From the sequence record ON286972.1: a stretch of DNA of 64,000 nt; one strand, 5' to 3'. The position numbers and the translations under genes are program-made. Numbering within the stretch: position 1 is the stretch's first letter; each line of letters opens with the position of its first letter. A model generated the notes under the pieces. That model saw only the letters and a list, made by a program, of their open reading frames with translations. It did not search any database and was not told where the DNA came from. Positions 1 through 24,248 of the stretch are shown piece by piece.

Positions 1-3000
1 CCATGAACCAGTGATATATCCATACAATTTAATCAATTCTTGAACTGCACCATAGGTTGGTTCATAGATATAATCACCGAAAATCGTCTGATCATCAAAA
101 ATAACAGCATGTTCATAAGAACTGATACTTAAACGAATAAGTGCTATGCGTTTATTTGATTCTTCAGTAGTTCTTACCGTGAATATGTTACCAATACGAG
201 ATGTTTCAATCTCAAATTGACGTATACCTTGGTTTGAATCATCTAATAATGACCAAACACCACCACTATTTTGTGCAATTGACTGAACTGAACCAAAATC
301 TGTACCAAATTTAGCATTAATTGCTGATGGGGTACAAGAAATGAATTCACCAGTACTCAATTGTTGTTGACTCCAGATTAAAAAGTCTTTTGCAATTGTA
401 TTCCAGTCCTGTTGGATACCAGATTCATCAACTTCTTCAAAAATCCAACCATGTTGCTTTAGATACTCACCATAACCACAAATAAATGTGTAAACTTCCT
501 GGAAGGTATTCATCAAAGTTCCGTAAGGAATGGATGCATCATTTTTCCACTCATTATAATGAACAACATTACGATTATCAACTTTCAAAGATACTTTATG
601 ACCGTTTTTAACAGGCAATTTATAATTGAATGTTGCAGAAACTAAATCATAACCATCAATTTGGTAAGCACTACCAGTCCAAGTAATTTTAATTGCACTC
701 ATTTGCTCATTTCTAATATTATTAGAACGAACTAAACCGATAGATTGGTTTTCTTGTGAAATTAGACCAGTTGCTTCTGATGTAAATGTTAATTGATCAG
801 CTTTAGTGAATCCACCTAGTTTATGACCCACATTAATATGAGAAGAACGAACAATTTCACCGTACTTAGTTGTAATATTTTTGTTTTGATACATCAAATA
901 ATCACTAACAATCATTTGATAACCAATAACGCGAGTACTATTCTCACCATGTACGATTGTATCACTATTAAAGTTCAAACGTAAACGAGTATCACCATAT
1001 AAAAACTGTGGTTCATTACCAGATACAGTTTTTAATGTATTATTTCGGGTATCCCAGAAATAGTTTGTGAACTGTGCAGGTTTAGCTTTGAATAACATCA
1101 ATAATTCATCATATGCAAACATTGCTGTGTTCATATAAGTGAATTCCATATCACCCATATCACCATAAGTCCACGGTTCAGCACGATGATTTAGACTACC
1201 ATATACAAGACCTAAAACTTCAGGAGCAATGTACTCAATGACGCAAATATCAACACCAGATGCTGTCTGCTTGCCTGTTTTAGTGATCTTAAAGGGTTGT
1301 GTACCAAAACGTTTGTACTTGTCATATTGACCTTTACGTGCACCAAACAAGATAGTACCCGTTGAGCTATCACCTTTCTCGTTACCAACGTCCCATAACC
1401 CACTAGGAACCATGTTACCTTGTTCGTTGATAACTAATGCCTCATAAACATAAACAACATCACCATCACGTTCGCCAACTTGAACTGCGGTAGGTTCATA
1501 TTCCTGGTTCCACCAAACTGGACGTTGGGAGAAACCAAACATTTCCCACGGATGGGTTGCTGGGCGATATGTACCAAATTGGTCAGTGTAGATTGCTCGC
1601 CATGAACCACGGGCTGCTATTTGTGTTTGTTGACCATTAACCATATAATGTGTTCCAGTATAGTTCCAAGTCATCCAGTTATTTGGATCATAATCATGTG
1701 AACTGTTACTGATACCATTGGTTGCGATGAAGTTAATATAACCACGTAGTAGTAAGTTCTTTTTCTCTTCGTCATTATACTCTGTATCTCTGAAATACGG
1801 AGTCGGGAAAAGATCAGAAGCATCTAGCTTAGGTTGGTAATCTTCATCTTTGAAAATAACATCAATACTATTGAAAATTCTATTTTCTAACTCATATATA
1901 ACGTCATCCATTTTATCAACACCGTTTATTACACGGTATGCTTTAGTGATTGCACCTGTATGACTGATGTTATAACAGCTTTGCTTACTACCAGCATTCA
2001 AAAATGTTGCTTTTTCTGGAACGTGTGCTTTCAAAATACCCAAAAACTGTGGAGTTGGTGGTACAAACGCACGAATGAAGCCAGAAGTACTTGCTACGTT
2101 ATCATAATAGAATGGGAAAGTATTATCATGACCCATATTAATAATTGTTAGAATTTCATCAACAATATTAGAAGCATTATTAGCTAAGAAGTTTGCTGGG
2201 TTCTCATTGTACAAACGGATCATTTGTGTATTGAACTTGTTTACGAAACGGAAATATTCGGATTGCATAAACAATACAGATTCAAATAGGTCAATATCTT
2301 CATTTGCAGAATGTGCCATTAACGGTAGCATTGATGCTTCGTTTTGAATAATCTTAGTACCAACGGAGTTATCCACTAAACCTTTAGACAAACGATCTTC
2401 GTAGTCGTTGAAATCATCAACGGAACCACTGGTGATATTCTTTTGAATGATATCTTTAAAATGTAATGTAAAATTACTTTGGTTGATATAAAGAATATTA
2501 TCGTTGTATGGGTTATTTTGTAAATTGATTGGGATTTCATATGCACCCAACTCTTTATTTGGTACTTCAGTACTGCTGTATGTTCTAATTTGAATCACTG
2601 ATTCATCTTTAAGAGCTACATCTTCACCTAAAGTGATGCTTTGAACCTTGTTATTATATACATGACGTGTATAATCGGTTACATCAACTCCATCAACTTG
2701 AATTTCAATGATTTCGGTACTCTTACCATCAATAATTTTCTGGGCTAATTCAAATGTGCGATTGAAACGTTCACTTTGAATACCTTCACCACTAATTACA
2801 TGCCAATCCATATAGGTTTGACGTTCTTCTTTGTAATATTGATAGGTACGATCCACTTCAGTAACATATGCATACATACCTTCTAATGGATTTTTAAAGT
2901 TTTCCATTTCGAATACAGTATTGAATACACGATACATATCAGTGTGTTCTATTTGTGGCGTTTGTTTAACGAATTGCTTTGAATCTTCCTTAGAACGAAC

Positions 3001-19446: not shown

Positions 19447-19478
19447 AATGTGCCTTAGATCTAAGTTAGTTTATGAAA

Positions 19479-19486
19479 TATTTATG
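19479..19486 (-). promoter_or_regulatory. Late promoter (CATAAATA) for endonuclease VII
   Basis: Lies inside a TTTATGAAATA x2 direct repeat, 33 nt upstream of the start. Confidence 0.5.
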
Positions 19487-19542
19487 AAATACATTCCTAA
19501 GAAATTTTTAAGTACTTTTTTTATAAAAAAGATTAGATATTT

Positions 19543-19571
19543 TGAGACACTTTTAAATTGCGTGCTATAAT
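19543..19571 (+). promoter_or_regulatory. Phage-class promoter TGAGACA-N16-TATAAT pointing into the non-coding island
   Basis: Motif and spacing identical to the other members; GTGC extended -10. Confidence 0.75.
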
Positions 19572-19577
19572 GTTTCA

Positions 19578-20063
19578 TGTAGTACTGACAATCCTGTTGA
19601 ATGCAGAAATGCATATAAATTAGAACCTAATCCACTCGAAAATGTAGAGGGTAGATGAGCAGTTCAACAGTGCGATGAGCAAAAGAAACCCGTTAGATGT
19701 GGGCATATTATGAACCCCTCACGGCGACACGGCTCAATAAAGAACTCCGATAAGCATACAGAGAGTTCCTCGATAGTTCCTCGATAGATGTATAAGGATC
19801 GCACCTTACCAGATTTGCTAAGGGAGTTTGATGATTCATTTCATTAAACAGCCTGAAGTTTGATTGTATAGACTTTCAGGTGAGTGTCAGGATGTTTAAG
19901 ACTGACGACCGTTGCACATGACTGCGATAGAGAGAAACAGAGCAACCCGCTTTCGTTCTTAATATTTTTACAATATAATTACGTTTAAATTTTAAGAAAT
20001 TCGCAATACAATAATACCGATGCCATCAGCGTCAAGAAACAGAGACTTAATTGTCTCTTTTTT
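19578..20063 (+). ncRNA. Candidate structured non-coding RNA (~480 nt)
   Basis: Promoter upstream, terminator downstream, no ORF of 60 aa or more, several nested stems (see findings). Family not recognised. Confidence 0.45.
20041..20063 (+). terminator. Intrinsic terminator
   Basis: AGAGAC-TTAATT-GTCTCT then TTTTT. Confidence 0.75.
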
Positions 20064-20160
20064 ATTATCTTCATTCCCCTGCGGGGGGATGAAATATCCT
20101 CAACAAATCCCGTCAAGTATTAAATCATTTAAAGTTCTTTATAATTATATTAAAATGAAT

Positions 20161-20220
20161 ATGAGTTAACGTAGTTAACGAATATTCTTCAGCTAACGAA
20201 TGAAATGAGTTAGATGAGTT
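20161..20220. repeat. Short repeat/palindrome cluster in an AT-rich tract
   Basis: ATGAGTT x3 (20161, 20205, 20214), GTTAACG x2, TAACGAA x2, GAATATTC palindrome. Confidence 0.6.
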
Positions 20221-20300
20221 CAATATAAATCAAATGAATTCCTTCAAGAATAAATCTTTTAAGATCATAATTTCTTTCATCTACTTTGTAAGTAAAAATC

Positions 20301-20341
20301 CAAAAAACAAAAACAAAAAAAAACCAGCAACAATGTGCTGG
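20301..20341 (-). terminator. Intrinsic terminator after the gp26/gp51-like unit
   Basis: CCAGCA-CATTGT-TGCTGG followed by a long T run on the minus strand. Confidence 0.85.
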
Positions 20342-20354
20342 CTTCTTATGAGTA

Positions 20355-20570
20355 TTAGTGCTTCTCGTTCATCTTCTTTACTTTCTTATTGTATGCCTTA
20401 ATAAGCATATCTCTGTCATTTACTGGCATATTAAGTAGAGTTGCATAATCGACATTATCTACATAAACAGCAGCATCCATAAGGGCATTTTTAATATCTG
20501 ATTTATTCAACTCCATATCATCCAGAAGTTCTTTTATTTCTTCTGGGTTTGAGAAGAGAAGCTGAGATCG
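20355..20570 (-). CDS. gp51-like baseplate hub assembly chaperone segment in the -1 frame of the gp26-like gene (not in the ORF track)
   Basis: Frame is open 20585-20355: ...FFRSQLLFSNPEEIKELLDDMELNKSDIKNALMDAAVYVDNVDYATLLNMPVNDRDMLIKAYNKKVKKMNEKH*. First ATG is only at 20516. TTTTTTC slippery site at 20576-20570. Confidence 0.7.
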   Translation of the reverse strand, partial: RSQLLFSNPEEIKELLDDMELNKSDIKNALMDAAVYVDNVDYATLLNMPVNDRDMLIKAYNKKVKKMNEKH

Positions 20571-21421
20571 AAAAAATGAGTAGGGTCATACTTTAATCCA
20601 GTAAGTTCCCATTGATGCTGACATTCAATACATTCAACTTCCATTGTATGCGATACACCAATCTCTAGTACTTCATCCATTTTCTCTCTGATTTGCTTGA
20701 TCACTTCTTTTGATTGAGTACCTAACCATTCACTTATGAATTTCTTATCTGATACTTCATCACCATCAGGAGTAATTACTTTATCAATAACTCCAGCAAT
20801 CATATCAAAGTTTAGTTGTGCCATGTTTTCAAATACTTCAGAAAACATTTTAATTTTATCATCTTCTGAAATATCAATAGTACTCTCAAGATACTTAGTT
20901 TTTTGTTGTTCAGCTAACATACGTTGAGAAAACTCTGAATATTCTTTCCAAGTAAGTGGTCTGAACTGAAGAGACAAACCATTATTAAGATCAATACTAG
21001 GAATTTCAGTAAAAGATTCTGCCGTTTCCAATAGATAAGAAAGATCACGTTCAAAACGGCCTTCTTTGGAACATGATGGACATACGACATTGACATCATA
21101 ACTGGTTTCTTTGGATGCTAACTTGATAGCAATAAGAATTTGCTCAACATCATTGACAAAAAGCTCATCTGCGTTTAGAATGTTTGGTACACAGTTTTCG
21201 ATAACAGATGACACTGCACTACCATTGAGTAACATATCAGGTGTATTGAGCATCATTTCGTCACGAGCACTACGAGCACAGACACCACATTTAATGCCTT
21301 TGCTCCCCAATACACCATCTTTGTACTGGAAAATGTTGTTAGTGACGAGTTTAGTACTAATTTCTTCGATTTTTGTGTATTTTGCTAACGGGTTCATTGA
21401 CATAATACTTTCTCCATGCAA
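20534..21421 (-). CDS. Baseplate hub assembly protein (gp26-like)
   Basis: ARDEMMLNTPDMLLNGSAV...IENC.P; D.EQILIAIKLAS; CPSC and CIEC; LQFRPLT; ends YDPTHFF. Confidence 0.75.
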   Translation of the reverse strand: MHGESIMSMNPLAKYTKIEEISTKLVTNNIFQYKDGVLGSKGIKCGVCARSARDEMMLNTPDMLLNGSAVSSVIENCVPNILNADELFVNDVEQILIAIKLASKETSYDVNVVCPSCSKEGRFERDLSYLLETAESFTEIPSIDLNNGLSLQFRPLTWKEYSEFSQRMLAEQQKTKYLESTIDISEDDKIKMFSEVFENMAQLNFDMIAGVIDKVITPDGDEVSDKKFISEWLGTQSKEVIKQIREKMDEVLEIGVSHTMEVECIECQHQWELTGLKYDPTHFFDLSFSSQTQKK

Positions 21422-21433
21422 TAATTATGAAAG

Positions 21434-21441
21434 TATTTATG
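21434..21441 (-). promoter_or_regulatory. Late promoter (CATAAATA) for the gp26-like gene
   Basis: Immediately upstream of the ORF. Confidence 0.55.
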
Positions 21442-21480
21442 TATGTTCAAAACTTCAAAATCACCCAAGAGGAATATTTT

Positions 21481-21969
21481 ATGATAAAGACAACAATCAA
21501 ACGTTTGTTCCAAGCCTTTGGTATCTTTATGGTTGTTATGTTAGTAATCGGTATGATTGTTCCGAAAAGCGAAACATCCACAACTAAAGAATCAGAGTAC
21601 AAAGAGCAGTTAACTAAACGTGAATTACCAACACAAATTGTTAGCTACAAAGGTAAACTGTATAACGAAGATCCTAACGAGGAACATTTAAAATGGACAT
21701 TCATCCAATTCACTGTTAACGGTGATGAAGTACTGATGGGTCAGACATATGAATCATGGAGTTATATTGGAAGTACTGCATCTGGATATGATGTTTATTA
21801 CAACATTAACGACTTCACTTATACTGTCGGCGGTGTTCAAAAGACAGTAAAACTTGAAGGTACATTGTATGTTAATAGAGAAACAAACTCTATCATATTC
21901 AGTAATAAAAATGTTAGTGACGGTTCACCAAAACGAACCTATAGTGCAGTACTGGAACCACGATACTAA
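21481..21969 (+). CDS. Hypothetical membrane-anchored/exported protein
   Basis: Start reassigned to ATG 21481 (GAGGA SD); basic N-terminus then hydrophobic FGIFMVVMLVIGMIV. Confidence 0.75.
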   Translation: MIKTTIKRLFQAFGIFMVVMLVIGMIVPKSETSTTKESEYKEQLTKRELPTQIVSYKGKLYNEDPNEEHLKWTFIQFTVNGDEVLMGQTYESWSYIGSTASGYDVYYNINDFTYTVGGVQKTVKLEGTLYVNRETNSIIFSNKNVSDGSPKRTYSAVLEPRY

Positions 21970-22076: not shown

Positions 22077-24248
22077 ATGGCTGTAAACAACAGTGATTAC
22101 TTACTACAACAGATAGTGAATAAATCTAATGATACCGTAGATGGTCTTTCAGCTATACGTGAATTGTTAGCAGAAAGTTTAAAGAATGATAAAAAGAAAA
22201 ATAATGGTGGTGGTAACCCATCACCTGGCGATTCATCTGGACCAAGTGGTGGTGGACGCGGTTCTCGTGGTAATTCATCCTCTATGGGTAAAATGTTCAG
22301 AGCAATGTCCAGCGAAATGACAAACGTTGGTAAAACAATGATGAGTACTTCAGCGAATGTCAGTACTGTCATTAACTCAATGGGTATGAGTGCATCATCC
22401 GTAGCTGGCTCTCTTTCTATGATCCCTGGTCCTGTAGGAATGGCAGCATCAGCATTTAAAATGGTTGCTGATGTAGGGATGGCAGTATATAACGTAATGA
22501 ACGCCCAGCTTGAAATGTACAACAGAGTCAACAGTGCGGGTGTTTCTCTTGCTGAAGGTTATGGCTCTTTGCTAAAAGGTTCAGGTTCAGCGTTAATGTC
22601 TATGGATCTATTCAGTGAAGTAATATCAACTCATAGTGATGTTATTGCACAATTGGATGGTTCGTATGGAGATGGCGTTAAGGAATTTGGTAAATTGTTA
22701 GGTGTAGTTCAAAATGCCCAAGATAAACTTGGCCTATATGGTATGTCACAAAAAACTTTATCAGATTTAGCAGCACGTAACATCAAAATTCAAAAACAAT
22801 TTGGTGGTGCAGAACTAGTAAGGAATATAAACCAAGCACAAAGTACCCAAGAGTTAATTAAAACTATGTCTACTTTTAGTAAGACAATGGGTATGTCAAT
22901 TGATGAATTACTTAAAAAGACACAATCACTTGATAAATCATTTGATGCAAGAATACTAAAAACTACACTAAACAACTGGGTGGGACTATCAGAAGAAACC
23001 GCAACATTAACCACTAAAGCACTTACCGAAGCGGCAGGTGGTATGGGGGATATGGGTACTGATTTCCTAAGATTGATTAGCCACAGAATATCAATTGGTG
23101 GTGTTCCTGATGATTTATTATCTCCAATGATTAGCGAATTCGCTGACCTTGGTGAGAACATGGTTAAGTCTGGTGTAACCGATGCAAAAGCTATACGTGA
23201 AGCACAATATCAGTGGGTGAAGAAAAACAGAAAACGCGTTGAAGCAGATATGGAAGATATGCAACGAAGTCAAAACTTCACCGCTGCCGCATTTGCTAAG
23301 CAAATGTTAGATATGGAAGCTGCAATTAATGCTGACAAAAATCGACCAGCAGATAAAATCGCAGAATTTACTGATAGATTGAACAGATGGGTCAGTACTG
23401 AATTTGTTGCTCCATTCAATAAAATGTATGCTGATGTTCAAAATAATGTTGTTGATTATTTGACAGCAATTGCAGATCGTACCGATAGTGCATGGGGATT
23501 TATTTGGGAATTGGCTAAAGATGGATTTGGGTTAGTTCCAATATTCAAGGATGCGGTTTCTTATGTTGACCGTATTGGTAACGAATTTGTATTATGGCTT
23601 GAGGGATTGGGTTCTGACATATTTGGGGACACATATACTCAAGTTTCAAAAGCATTCGATGACTTCATGAAGAATCTCATGGATTTACCTGGAAAGTTAT
23701 GGGATAAAGTAAAAGGATGGTTTGGTTCAGATGATAAATCTGAAAAACAAGAAGAACCTAAAAAGAAAATAGAAGAGAAAGCTACATCTTTCTGGGATTC
23801 TATTGGTAATTCAGTAGACGATTTCACAAAATTTGTAGAAGAAAAAACACTTGACTTCCAAAAATGGAAATCTTCTAAATTATATACACCACCTAGACCA
23901 TTTAACGTAGATAATGCATATCGAGTCTTGGGCTATGAACCACCTAAAAACGTCCAGACTACAGTAATGCCAAATACACCACCTATGATGGAATTAACTC
24001 GTAAACATTATGATAAATCCGCATGGAAACCTGGTGAAGCACCATTCCCACCAGAACCAGATCGTGATATAAAATCTCTGGTAACGCCTCAAAACGGAAC
24101 TATAAATAATGACATGAGTTCAGAAGAGATCAAAGAAATTTTTAAACGTCTAGCAGAAATGAGTGAACAATCACTCGCAGCAACAAATCAGACAAATAAT
24201 TACTTAAGAACAATTTCTGAAAATACACAAGGTGAACGCAATAGTTAA
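22077..24248 (+). CDS. Tape-measure-like/baseplate hub protein (putative)
   Basis: 723 aa; A/G/S/M-rich helical composition; divergent from gp26-like as T4 gp29 is; late promoter. Confidence 0.5.
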   Translation: MAVNNSDYLLQQIVNKSNDTVDGLSAIRELLAESLKNDKKKNNGGGNPSPGDSSGPSGGGRGSRGNSSSMGKMFRAMSSEMTNVGKTMMSTSANVSTVINSMGMSASSVAGSLSMIPGPVGMAASAFKMVADVGMAVYNVMNAQLEMYNRVNSAGVSLAEGYGSLLKGSGSALMSMDLFSEVISTHSDVIAQLDGSYGDGVKEFGKLLGVVQNAQDKLGLYGMSQKTLSDLAARNIKIQKQFGGAELVRNINQAQSTQELIKTMSTFSKTMGMSIDELLKKTQSLDKSFDARILKTTLNNWVGLSEETATLTTKALTEAAGGMGDMGTDFLRLISHRISIGGVPDDLLSPMISEFADLGENMVKSGVTDAKAIREAQYQWVKKNRKRVEADMEDMQRSQNFTAAAFAKQMLDMEAAINADKNRPADKIAEFTDRLNRWVSTEFVAPFNKMYADVQNNVVDYLTAIADRTDSAWGFIWELAKDGFGLVPIFKDAVSYVDRIGNEFVLWLEGLGSDIFGDTYTQVSKAFDDFMKNLMDLPGKLWDKVKGWFGSDDKSEKQEEPKKKIEEKATSFWDSIGNSVDDFTKFVEEKTLDFQKWKSSKLYTPPRPFNVDNAYRVLGYEPPKNVQTTVMPNTPPMMELTRKHYDKSAWKPGEAPFPPEPDRDIKSLVTPQNGTINNDMSSEEIKEIFKRLAEMSEQSLAATNQTNNYLRTISENTQGERNS

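Follow-up and report, generated by a model that had tools for sequence, protein, structure and literature searches.

A slippery U UUU UUC heptamer near the end of the single baseplate-hub assembly gene of Escherichia phage A4, a RaK2-like jumbo myovirus, very probably allows some ribosomes to slip back one base and add a 71-residue gp51-type tail to the product. One gene would then make the short and long proteins that phage T4 makes from two genes, gp26 and gp51. No fusion protein has been observed and our inference is comparative, but the same signal, which is not annotated in any record we inspected, is conserved in many jumbo phages and marine cyanophages. The analysis was made on a 64,000-nucleotide window of the A4 record (ON286972.1). 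A sequence-only reading of this window had proposed that the heptamer fuses the gp26-like gene to a hidden gp51-like frame, and the positions and frames it described were confirmed in the sequence.

Coordinates of the features in the 64,000-nucleotide window of phage A4
Feature	Position	Strand	Description
gp26-like baseplate-hub assembly gene (annotated as A4_2)	20534..21403	-	0-frame product of 289 aa (short form); two CxxC pairs and the invariant C-terminal FF
-1-frame TGA	20586..20588	-	Closes the -1 frame four codons upstream of the heptamer, so the -1 frame cannot be entered from further upstream
Slippery heptamer T TTT TTC (X XXY YYZ)	20570..20576	-	0-frame phase CAT TTT TTC (20578-20570), then eleven sense codons and TAA; proposed site of the -1 tandem slip of two tRNA-Phe
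-1-frame extension	20358..20570	-	71 codons (RSQLLFSNPEEI...NEKH), Gp51_C-type helical domain; base 20570 is read twice; stop at 20357-20355; long transframe product is residues 1-278 of the gene plus these 71, 349 aa
Annotated 53-aa ORF (A4_1)	20355..20516	-	Part of the extension downstream of the first ATG (codon 18 after the slip), not the whole conserved domain
Predicted RNA structure	20507..20565	-	Starts 4 nt after the heptamer; outer stem 20565-20558 with 20514-20507; inner 7-bp hairpin CCAGAAG (20546-20540) with CTTCTGG (20528-20522); candidate frameshift stimulator that partly sequesters ATG 20516
Intrinsic terminator	20318..20347	-	12 pairs; ends the gp26/extension transcription unit
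ORF between the gp26-like and tape-measure-like genes	21427-21969		
Tape-measure-like gene	22077-24248	opposite to the gp26-like gene	723 aa

After its TGA the -1 frame reads FF-RSQLLFSNPEEIKELLDD-MELN...H, with no ATG, GTG or TTG before ATG 20516. The predicted long form would contain the tryptic peptide YDPTHFFR at the junction and SQLLFSNPEEIK upstream of this ATG. The terminator stem that follows is also conserved in 121Q and UE-S1. A single heptamer is not in itself more than chance, as TTTTTTC occurs 18 times in the window against 30 expected. What exceeds chance is its conservation. The heptamer is invariant in 32 distinct jumbo-type junctions, of which 28 read T TTT TTC and 4 read T TTT TTT, and in 53 of 53 distinct cyanophage-type junctions, always in the same phase of the upstream frame. 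Interestingly, the residue before the FF varies between H, R, N, S, Y, T, A, V and D, yet its codon always ends in T, giving ten different codons, and the first Phe codon is always TTT. A null model based on codon usage gave a summed log10 p of -16. Eight consecutive invariant columns, TTTTTTCG, sit between columns of 1-2 bits entropy.

In contrast to the heptamer, the position of the 0-frame stop wanders, lying 1, 2, 3, 4, 6, 10 or 11 codons downstream, whereas the -1 frame reads a conserved FFR.RLL... for 59-82 codons. In A4 this conservation extends 18 codons upstream of the ATG at which the annotated ORF begins. No ATG, GTG or TTG occurs within the first 8 codons in 21 of 32 jumbo-type and 19 of 53 cyanophage-type junctions, and in PA5oct there is none at all. 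We also observed no -1-frame start upstream of the heptamer in 30 of 32 and 53 of 53 junctions respectively.

The gp26-like product matches the phrog_150 'baseplate hub' profile with an E value of 3.9e-34 over profile positions 2-239 of 282, and both T4 gp26 and gp51 hit the same profile. The extension matched phrog_18291, but PHROGs did not link it directly to phrog_150 or phrog_634. Using hhalign, however, the virtual fusion aligned with the T4 gp51 family across the junction (E 2e-7, 215 columns; reversed control E 0.1) and the extension alone gave E 6.5e-4. The cyanophage extensions provided a bridge at E 7.5e-10 and 8.9e-5. The cyanophage fusion against gp51 gave E 1.6e-15, and the jumbo fusion against the cyanophage fusion gave E 2.1e-15 over 280 columns. 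An Atlas search placed the extension with named clusters that carry the Gp51_C domain (PF28602), with a score of 0.93 and 185 of 256 shared features. The gp51-like assignment made from the sequence alone was therefore correct, and cyanophage records annotate the equivalent -1 ORF as gp51.

We next searched for relatives of the extension. A word-indexed protein search with the 73-aa extension returned only 2 hits and no Pfam label, but an exhaustive profile search found 542 relatives. Nineteen of the best 150 are single ORFs of 319-351 aa with the match at the extreme C terminus, which is the length predicted for the fusion. In the 11 whose sequences were read, the junction D-x4-F-R has the same length as D-P-S-x-F-F|R, and the one looked up lies directly after a short paralog. 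The jumbo genomes searched have one phrog_150 gene, while T4 has two and S-PM2 has one gene plus the -1 piece.

The RNA downstream of the slip site also appears to be more structured than the gene body. The minimum-energy fold of the 70 nt downstream in A4 has an energy of -18.3 kcal/mol (z -2.68, 3 of 200 shuffles as good). It contains the CCAGAAG/CTTCTGG pairing suggested in the sequence-only reading, but the other pairing suggested there, CTTCT/AGAAG, is not used. Over the 60 nt after the heptamer the cyanophage set gave a mean z of -1.94 against +0.1 to -0.7 for gene-body windows (p 6e-13), and the jumbo set gave -1.06 against -0.2 to -0.5 (p 0.015). Strong hairpins occur in most cyanophage-type lineages, mostly with a spacer of 4-10 nt, and a long-range stem in the Atu_ph07-like clade shows covariation. 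No single structure is conserved, however. RNAalifold on gapless alignments returned no consensus in either set, hairpin sequences and register differ between subclades, several RaK2-like lineages have z near 0, and Rfam found nothing near the site.

Taken together, the best explanation is that the gp26-like gene of A4 is decoded in two ways. Most ribosomes would read the 0 frame to its TAA and make the short form, while a fraction pause with tRNA-Phe on UUU in the P site and tRNA-Phe on UUC in the A site. Both tRNAs would then slip back one base onto UUU UUU and translation would continue in the -1 frame to give the long form, with the downstream RNA structure possibly setting the frequency. 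Heptamers of the H_HH.U_UU.Y type are among the most efficient in E. coli, and U_UU.U_UU.C is used by IS elements (PMC4066793). That slipping happens on the ribosome, its efficiency, and a role for both forms in hub assembly are inferred.

We considered whether these could instead be two ordinary genes, with the downstream ORF translated only from its own start codon by coupling or re-initiation after the gp26 stop, and the heptamer reflecting no more than a conserved xFF motif in AT-rich genomes. All public records inspected annotate the locus this way or not at all. Many lineages do have a start codon close to the junction, with a TAATG overlap in 121Q, XbC2 and Serratia BF and an ATG three codons after the heptamer in S-PM2, and a weak GGA lies upstream of ATG 20516 in A4. 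A short paralog that has no extension also carries AAT TTT TTC although its -1 frame stops at once, so part of the persistence of the heptamer may come from the xFF motif and AT-rich codon use. Nevertheless we consider this explanation unlikely, as it does not account for protein-level conservation of 8-47 codons upstream of the first possible start in 40 of 85 junctions, the absence of any start in PA5oct, the invariant T before the FF, the in-frame fusions of the same length, or the fact that -1-frame conservation begins exactly at the heptamer with an invariant CGN Arg codon. ATG 20516 furthermore lies inside a predicted helix of the domain and partly inside an RNA stem. A free Gp51_C peptide made by translational coupling remains plausible in the lineages with a nearby start, and in A4 a free 53-aa product cannot be excluded as an additional product.

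It is also possible, though again unlikely, that the fusion is made by transcriptional slippage, with RNA polymerase adding one U so that a fraction of mRNAs carry the gene and the extension in one frame. The site is a homopolymeric run of six T, seven in four lineages and nine in RsoM2USA, and homopolymer runs are known slippage sites (PMC5009743), with depletion of UUUUUUU noted previously (PMC4066793). However, six U is rather short for efficient slippage by bacterial RNA polymerase, and the run is held at six followed by C in 81 of 85 junctions rather than lengthened. The phase is the canonical X XXY YYZ, and enrichment of RNA structure a few nucleotides downstream, although not seen in every lineage, is the hallmark of ribosomal frameshift stimulators. 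A sequencing error or recent disruption of the locus is effectively refuted. Although A4 has lost both the TAA stop and the overlapping ATG relative to 121Q, three independent public DNA assemblies are identical over 20334-20617 with no indel in the T run. The same stop position and lack of an early ATG occur in the Munch, Serratia BF, Yersinia, XaC1 and uncultured lineages, and the arrangement is conserved across virus families.

The proposed mechanism resembles that of the lambda gpG/gpGT and P2 E/E+E' tail assembly chaperones, where an X XXY YYZ site near the 3' end of a tail-morphogenesis gene, with the 0-frame stop close by, yields a short product and a C-terminally extended one, the likely purpose being a fixed ratio of assembly factors that are not virion components (PMC5009743). 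The CBB and phAPEC6 virion proteomes that we read list no baseplate-hub/gp26-family protein under those names. The sequence-only reading had linked T4 gp26/gp51 to the G/GT paradigm, but this link is one of expression logic only. No homology to the gpG-type chaperones was found (the family here is PF12322/Gp51_C), the heptamer is U UUU UUC rather than G GGA AAG, and the gene is transcribed divergently from the tape-measure-like gene, with one ORF between them, rather than lying directly upstream of it on the same strand. An AlphaFold model of a natural in-frame long-form homolog (P0117, pLDDT 89) gave no PDB match at E <= 0.001 in Foldseek and VIA-align searches, the best VIA-align Z being 6.0 on a small helical bundle, although a missing match does not prove a different fold. 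In the bacterial dnaX tau/gamma and IS3-family transposase frameshifts, -1 tandem slippage occurs on a heptamer with a downstream RNA structure, for which the evidence in A4 and its relatives is mixed. No upstream Shine-Dalgarno-like stimulator is evident in A4, however, and in dnaX the frameshift product is the shorter protein.

The two predicted products correspond to the hub assembly chaperones of T4, gp26 (short, PF12322 only) and gp51 (long, PF12322 plus Gp51_C), of which gp51 is essential and absent from the particle (PMC3004832). The short form matches the gp26/gp51 core including the C-terminal FF, T4 gp26 ending KEFFELL, and the long form matches gp51 end to end. T4 encodes the two forms as diverged paralogous genes on opposite strands, whereas in A4 both would share an identical 278-residue core and frameshifting would supply them in a fixed ratio. 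In the cyanophage 'gp26' plus 57-aa 'gp51' gene pair (e.g. S-PM2 p207/p208; phrog_634) the junction is identical, reading TCT TTT TTC GCA TAA with the annotated gp51 in the -1 frame, and all 53 distinct relatives keep it. There the extension is shorter (59-66 aa) and the 0-frame stop is always one codon after the heptamer. About half have ATG three codons after the slip, which is why the ORF has been annotated as an independent gene.

The mechanism is canonical, but we found no previous report of a frameshift in gp26, gp51 or baseplate-hub genes, and the 2016 recoding review (PMC5009743) does not mention baseplate genes in the part examined. A more speculative and tentative possibility is that recoding at U UUU UUC is the ancestral and most widespread way in which T4-superfamily phages, including the jumbo RaK2-, PA5oct- and Atu_ph07-like phages and the marine cyanomyoviruses, make their hub-assembly pair. 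The 'tiny gp51' core gene of cyanophages would then really be the C-terminal domain of a gp26-51 transframe protein, and the separate T4 genes 26 and 51 a derived duplication in which one copy fixed the fusion. The short:long ratio would be a required parameter of hub, and possibly tape-measure, assembly, making gp26/gp51 the long-missing functional counterpart of G/GT in T4-like tails.

The finding would correct the annotation of the several hundred related loci and records found in these searches, in which the extension is either missed (RaK2, PA5oct, RsoM2USA), truncated to an internal ATG (A4, K64-1, Atu_ph07) or called an independent 'gp51' (cyanophages), and it would add a deeply conserved, non-G/GT frameshift to the catalogue of phage recoding. 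gp26 and gp51 are two of the least understood essential T4 tail genes, and this would give them a concrete, testable relation, that of the same core with or without a Gp51_C domain and both forms needed. One requirement, a short and a long form of an assembly factor, appears to be met in three ways, through recoding, tandem duplication and dispersed paralogs.

Escherichia phage A4 (ON286972, Asteriusvirus, 355 kb) is a RaK2-like jumbo myovirus, and on the minus strand of the window the gp26-like gene A4_2 is followed by the annotated ORF A4_1 and an intrinsic terminator. Upstream and divergent lie an unassigned 180-aa ORF and a 723-aa tape-measure-like structural protein. The sequence-only reading had proposed that a slippery heptamer would fuse the gp26-like gene to a hidden gp51-like frame, and every element it described is present in the sequence. 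The heptamer sits in X XXY YYZ phase, and the -1 frame is closed just upstream and contains no ATG, GTG or TTG before the ATG of A4_1. The heptamer alone is not remarkable, as 18 copies occur in the window against 30 expected. Three independent public assemblies show the same sequence without indels, so it is not an error. Interestingly, the gp26-like core has two CxxC pairs that are invariant among RaK2-like phages, probably forming a zinc ribbon, and T4 gp26 and gp51 keep equivalents. Several distant homologs (uvig32, 35, 39 and 42-45 in our set) and S-PM2 lack the second pair while keeping the FF end. The homolog in Yersinia phage fHe-Yen9-03 is annotated as a 'Lead, cadmium, zinc and mercury transporting ATPase', a clear automatic misannotation that was presumably triggered by these motifs. 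The terminator stem is also called on the plus strand and may therefore act in both directions; its sequence, CCAGCA...TGCTGG, is conserved in 121Q and UE-S1 although the flanks differ. Between the terminator and the endonuclease VII gene lies a stretch of roughly 900 nt with no convincing ORF, in which we found no Rfam hit and only two AT-rich palindromes. A gap of similar size (about 790-840 nt) is present in 121Q, UE-S1, CBB, GAP32 and Serratia BF, and UE-S1 annotates a repeat_region in it.

Coordinates of features in the A4 window and in related loci (L numbers are our labels for fetched sequences)
Sequence	Coordinates	Strand	Feature
A4 window	21403-20534	minus	gp26-like gene A4_2, 289 aa; phrog_150 'baseplate hub', E 3.9e-34; CxxC pairs C108/C111 and C258/C261
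A4 window	20588-20586	minus	TGA closing the -1 frame
A4 window	20576-20570	minus	heptamer T TTT TTC, read as CAT TTT TTC
A4 window	20516-20355	minus	annotated 53-aa ORF A4_1, starting at ATG 20516; phrog_18291
A4 window	20357-20355	minus	stop of the -1 frame, after 73 codons (FF + 71)
A4 window	20347-20318	minus	12-pair intrinsic terminator
A4 window	20324-20341	plus	terminator stem as called on this strand
A4 window	19447-20354		stretch with no convincing ORF
Synechococcus phage S-PM2, NC_006820 (L058), and L059-L138	150471-151363 (L058:672-1564)		gp26 with annotated 57-aa 'gp51 baseplate hub assembly catalyst' in the -1 frame directly behind it
Uncultured phage contig (L054)	411-2389		short (294 aa) and long in-frame (351 aa) PF12322 paralogs in tandem
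Ralstonia phage RsoM2USA (L049)	1947-2222		slip site as a run of nine T, with unannotated 82-codon extension
Yersinia phage fHe-Yen9-03 (L009)	471-1346		gp26 homolog g246c

To test whether the site is conserved we fetched the junction from 13 isolated relatives and 33 IMG/VR contigs, and then from six more distant jumbo phages. The isolated relatives were 121Q, UE-S1, RaK2, K64-1, Munch, CBB, GAP32, Serratia BF, Yersinia fHe-Yen9-03, Xanthomonas XaC1 and XbC2, and a Vibrio phage, and the more distant ones were PA5oct, Xoo-sp13, RsoM2USA, SCTP-2, RAS14 and Atu_ph07. Some of the core proteins are only 23-31% identical to that of A4. All 32 distinct junctions carry T TTT TTC (28) or T TTT TTT (4) in the same phase. 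The residue before FF is H, R, N, S, Y, T, A, V or D, yet its codon always ends in T and the first Phe codon is always TTT. Against the codon usage of each gene this gives a summed log10 p of -16, although the lineages are not all independent. In an ungapped nucleotide alignment eight columns (TTTTTTCG) are invariant between columns of 1-2 bits entropy. The 0 frame ends 1, 2, 3, 4, 6, 10 or 11 codons later, depending on lineage, while the -1 frame reads a conserved FFR.RLL..EE(I/V)... for 70-82 codons. The Arg codon straddling the end of the heptamer varies synonymously (CGA, CGG, CGT, CGC), while the overlapping 0-frame residue is D, E, G, V or A.

We also observed that the first ATG, GTG or TTG of the -1 frame falls anywhere from codon 1 to codon 47, and that 21 of the 32 junctions have none in the first eight codons. 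PA5oct has none in the whole extension, and only 2 of 32 have any start between the upstream -1 stop and the heptamer. The GenBank annotations reflect this, as the ORF is missing in RaK2, PA5oct and RsoM2USA and begins at different internal codons elsewhere. The conserved N-terminal part of the extension therefore cannot be reached by initiation in most lineages, A4 included.

T4 gp26 (208 aa) and gp51 (249 aa) both match phrog_150, gp26 over profile positions 14-235 and gp51 over 13-280. Homologs of gp51 carry PF12322 plus PF28602, which the Atlas names Gp51_C. We aligned 35 virtual fusions, in which the 0 frame was read through FF and then continued in the -1 frame, and this alignment matches a gp51 family alignment at E 2e-7 over 215 columns, compared with E 0.1 for a reversed control. 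The match crosses the junction, with FFR-LL-NPEEI aligned onto iFK-LL-nPDEv and sYe..mNMs..ER onto ydl.sImnMiPiER. The extension alone hits the gp51 C terminus at E 6.5e-4, and a feature search of the Atlas placed the A4 extension next to clusters labelled 'baseplate hub assembly catalyst / Gp51_C' (score 0.93, 185 of 256 features shared). The resemblance to gp51 noted in the sequence-only reading is therefore real.

A profile of 19 extensions searched against 1.84 billion representative proteins found 542 relatives. Most are short ORFs of 44-102 aa with ragged N termini, but nineteen of the top 150 are single proteins of 319-351 aa with the match at the extreme C terminus. In the 11 whose sequences were read, the junction reads D-x-x-x-x-F-R-x-x-(I/L)-(L/I), the same spacing as D-P-S-x-F-F|R in the proposed frameshift product. 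One of them (P0117) lies directly downstream of a 294-aa short paralog with the same Pfam domain. Whole-record searches find one family gene in A4, RaK2, PA5oct and Atu_ph07, and two in T4. The short and long forms are thus supplied by dispersed paralogs (T4), by tandem paralogs (the uncultured phage contig L054) or, as we propose here, by one recoded gene. Interestingly, the short paralog on L054 still has AAT TTT TTC near its end, although its -1 frame stops after one codon, and this may be a relic of a recoded ancestor. AlphaFold2 on the in-frame homolog gave a confident model (pLDDT 89, pTM 0.82) in which the extension is predicted to be a helical domain, residues 271-346. No solved structure resembles it convincingly.

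A similar arrangement was found in the cyanophages. In S-PM2 the phrog_150 profile matches two adjacent pieces in frames 0 and -1. Here gp26 ends QSFFA with TCT TTT TTC GCA TAA, and the annotated 57-aa 'gp51' is the -1 frame beginning three codons after the heptamer. Among IMG/VR relatives of S-PM2 gp26, 53 of 53 distinct junctions have TTTTTTC, the preceding codon is always NNT (TCT, AGT, AAT, GAT, GCT), the 0-frame stop is exactly one codon later, and 19 have no start codon in the first eight codons. These extensions match the gp51 C terminus at E 7.5e-10. The cyanophage virtual fusion matches gp51 at E 1.6e-15, and matches the jumbo virtual fusion at E 2.1e-15 over 280 columns.

In A4 the 70 nt after the heptamer are predicted to fold at -18.3 kcal/mol (z -2.68), with an outer stem starting 4 nt downstream. 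The inner hairpin is the CCAGAAG/CTTCTGG pairing that the sequence-only reading had suggested as a possible stimulator, and the structure partly covers ATG 20516. In the jumbo set the first 60 nt downstream have a mean z of -1.06, against -0.2 to -0.5 for five gene-body windows (p 0.015), and in the cyanophage set the values are -1.94 against +0.1 to -0.7 (p 6e-13), although these p values ignore relatedness. No single structure is shared by all, and several RaK2-like lineages show none. Nearly every cyanophage lineage has a 7-17-bp hairpin, most starting 4-10 nt after the heptamer, and the sequences differ between subclades, so the encoded peptides change together with the pairing. In the Atu_ph07-like clade a long-range stem (GGCUUUUG with CAAAAGCC and variants) starts at +7. 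It pairs in 79.5% of cells, a value reached by 0 of 500 shuffles, and has two pairs with compensatory changes. In RsoM2USA the slip site is followed 14 nt later by a perfect 11-bp hairpin, and the extension has no start codon until codon 47.

Both slip-site codons are read by tRNA-Phe (anticodon GAA), which can generally re-pair with UUU after a -1 shift. In E. coli the H_HH.U_UU.Y heptamers are among the most efficient, and U_UU.U_UU.C is used by IS elements (PMC4066793). We therefore consider it likely that ribosomal -1 frameshifting produces a 349-aa gp26-51 protein alongside the 289-aa form. It is possible that the fusion arises instead through transcriptional slippage in the U run, but we regard this as unlikely in view of the short run, its maintenance at six U and the downstream structures. 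The nine-T run of RsoM2USA could also give such slippage or length heterogeneity. Purely independent initiation appears similarly unlikely, as it cannot explain conservation upstream of any start, the NNT rule or the in-frame homologs. A free small peptide may nevertheless be made in addition where a start codon is close, as in 121Q and S-PM2, and perhaps in A4 from ATG 20516. An artefact is very improbable.

In T4 both gp26 and gp51 are listed as hub assembly chaperones, and gp51 is essential, of unknown mechanism and absent from the particle (PMC3004832). Neither ORF was found in the virion proteome of CBB, judging by the protein names listed there. By homology we infer that the A4 products should act in hub assembly. 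The sequence-only reading had linked gp26 and gp51 to the lambda G/GT paradigm, but the parallel is in expression logic only, as the family differs, no fold similarity was found (which does not prove a different fold), and the gene is not directly upstream of the tape-measure gene on its strand. None of the public records inspected annotates a slippage join at this site, and outside subscription-only literature we found no report of a frameshift in gp26, gp51 or baseplate-hub genes, nor does the 2016 recoding review mention baseplate genes in the portion consulted. The mechanism itself is canonical, and what appears to be new is its proposed use in this gene family. Its breadth covers jumbo phages of many hosts and the marine cyanomyoviruses and, together with the light it throws on T4 genes 26 and 51, this makes it of clear interest.
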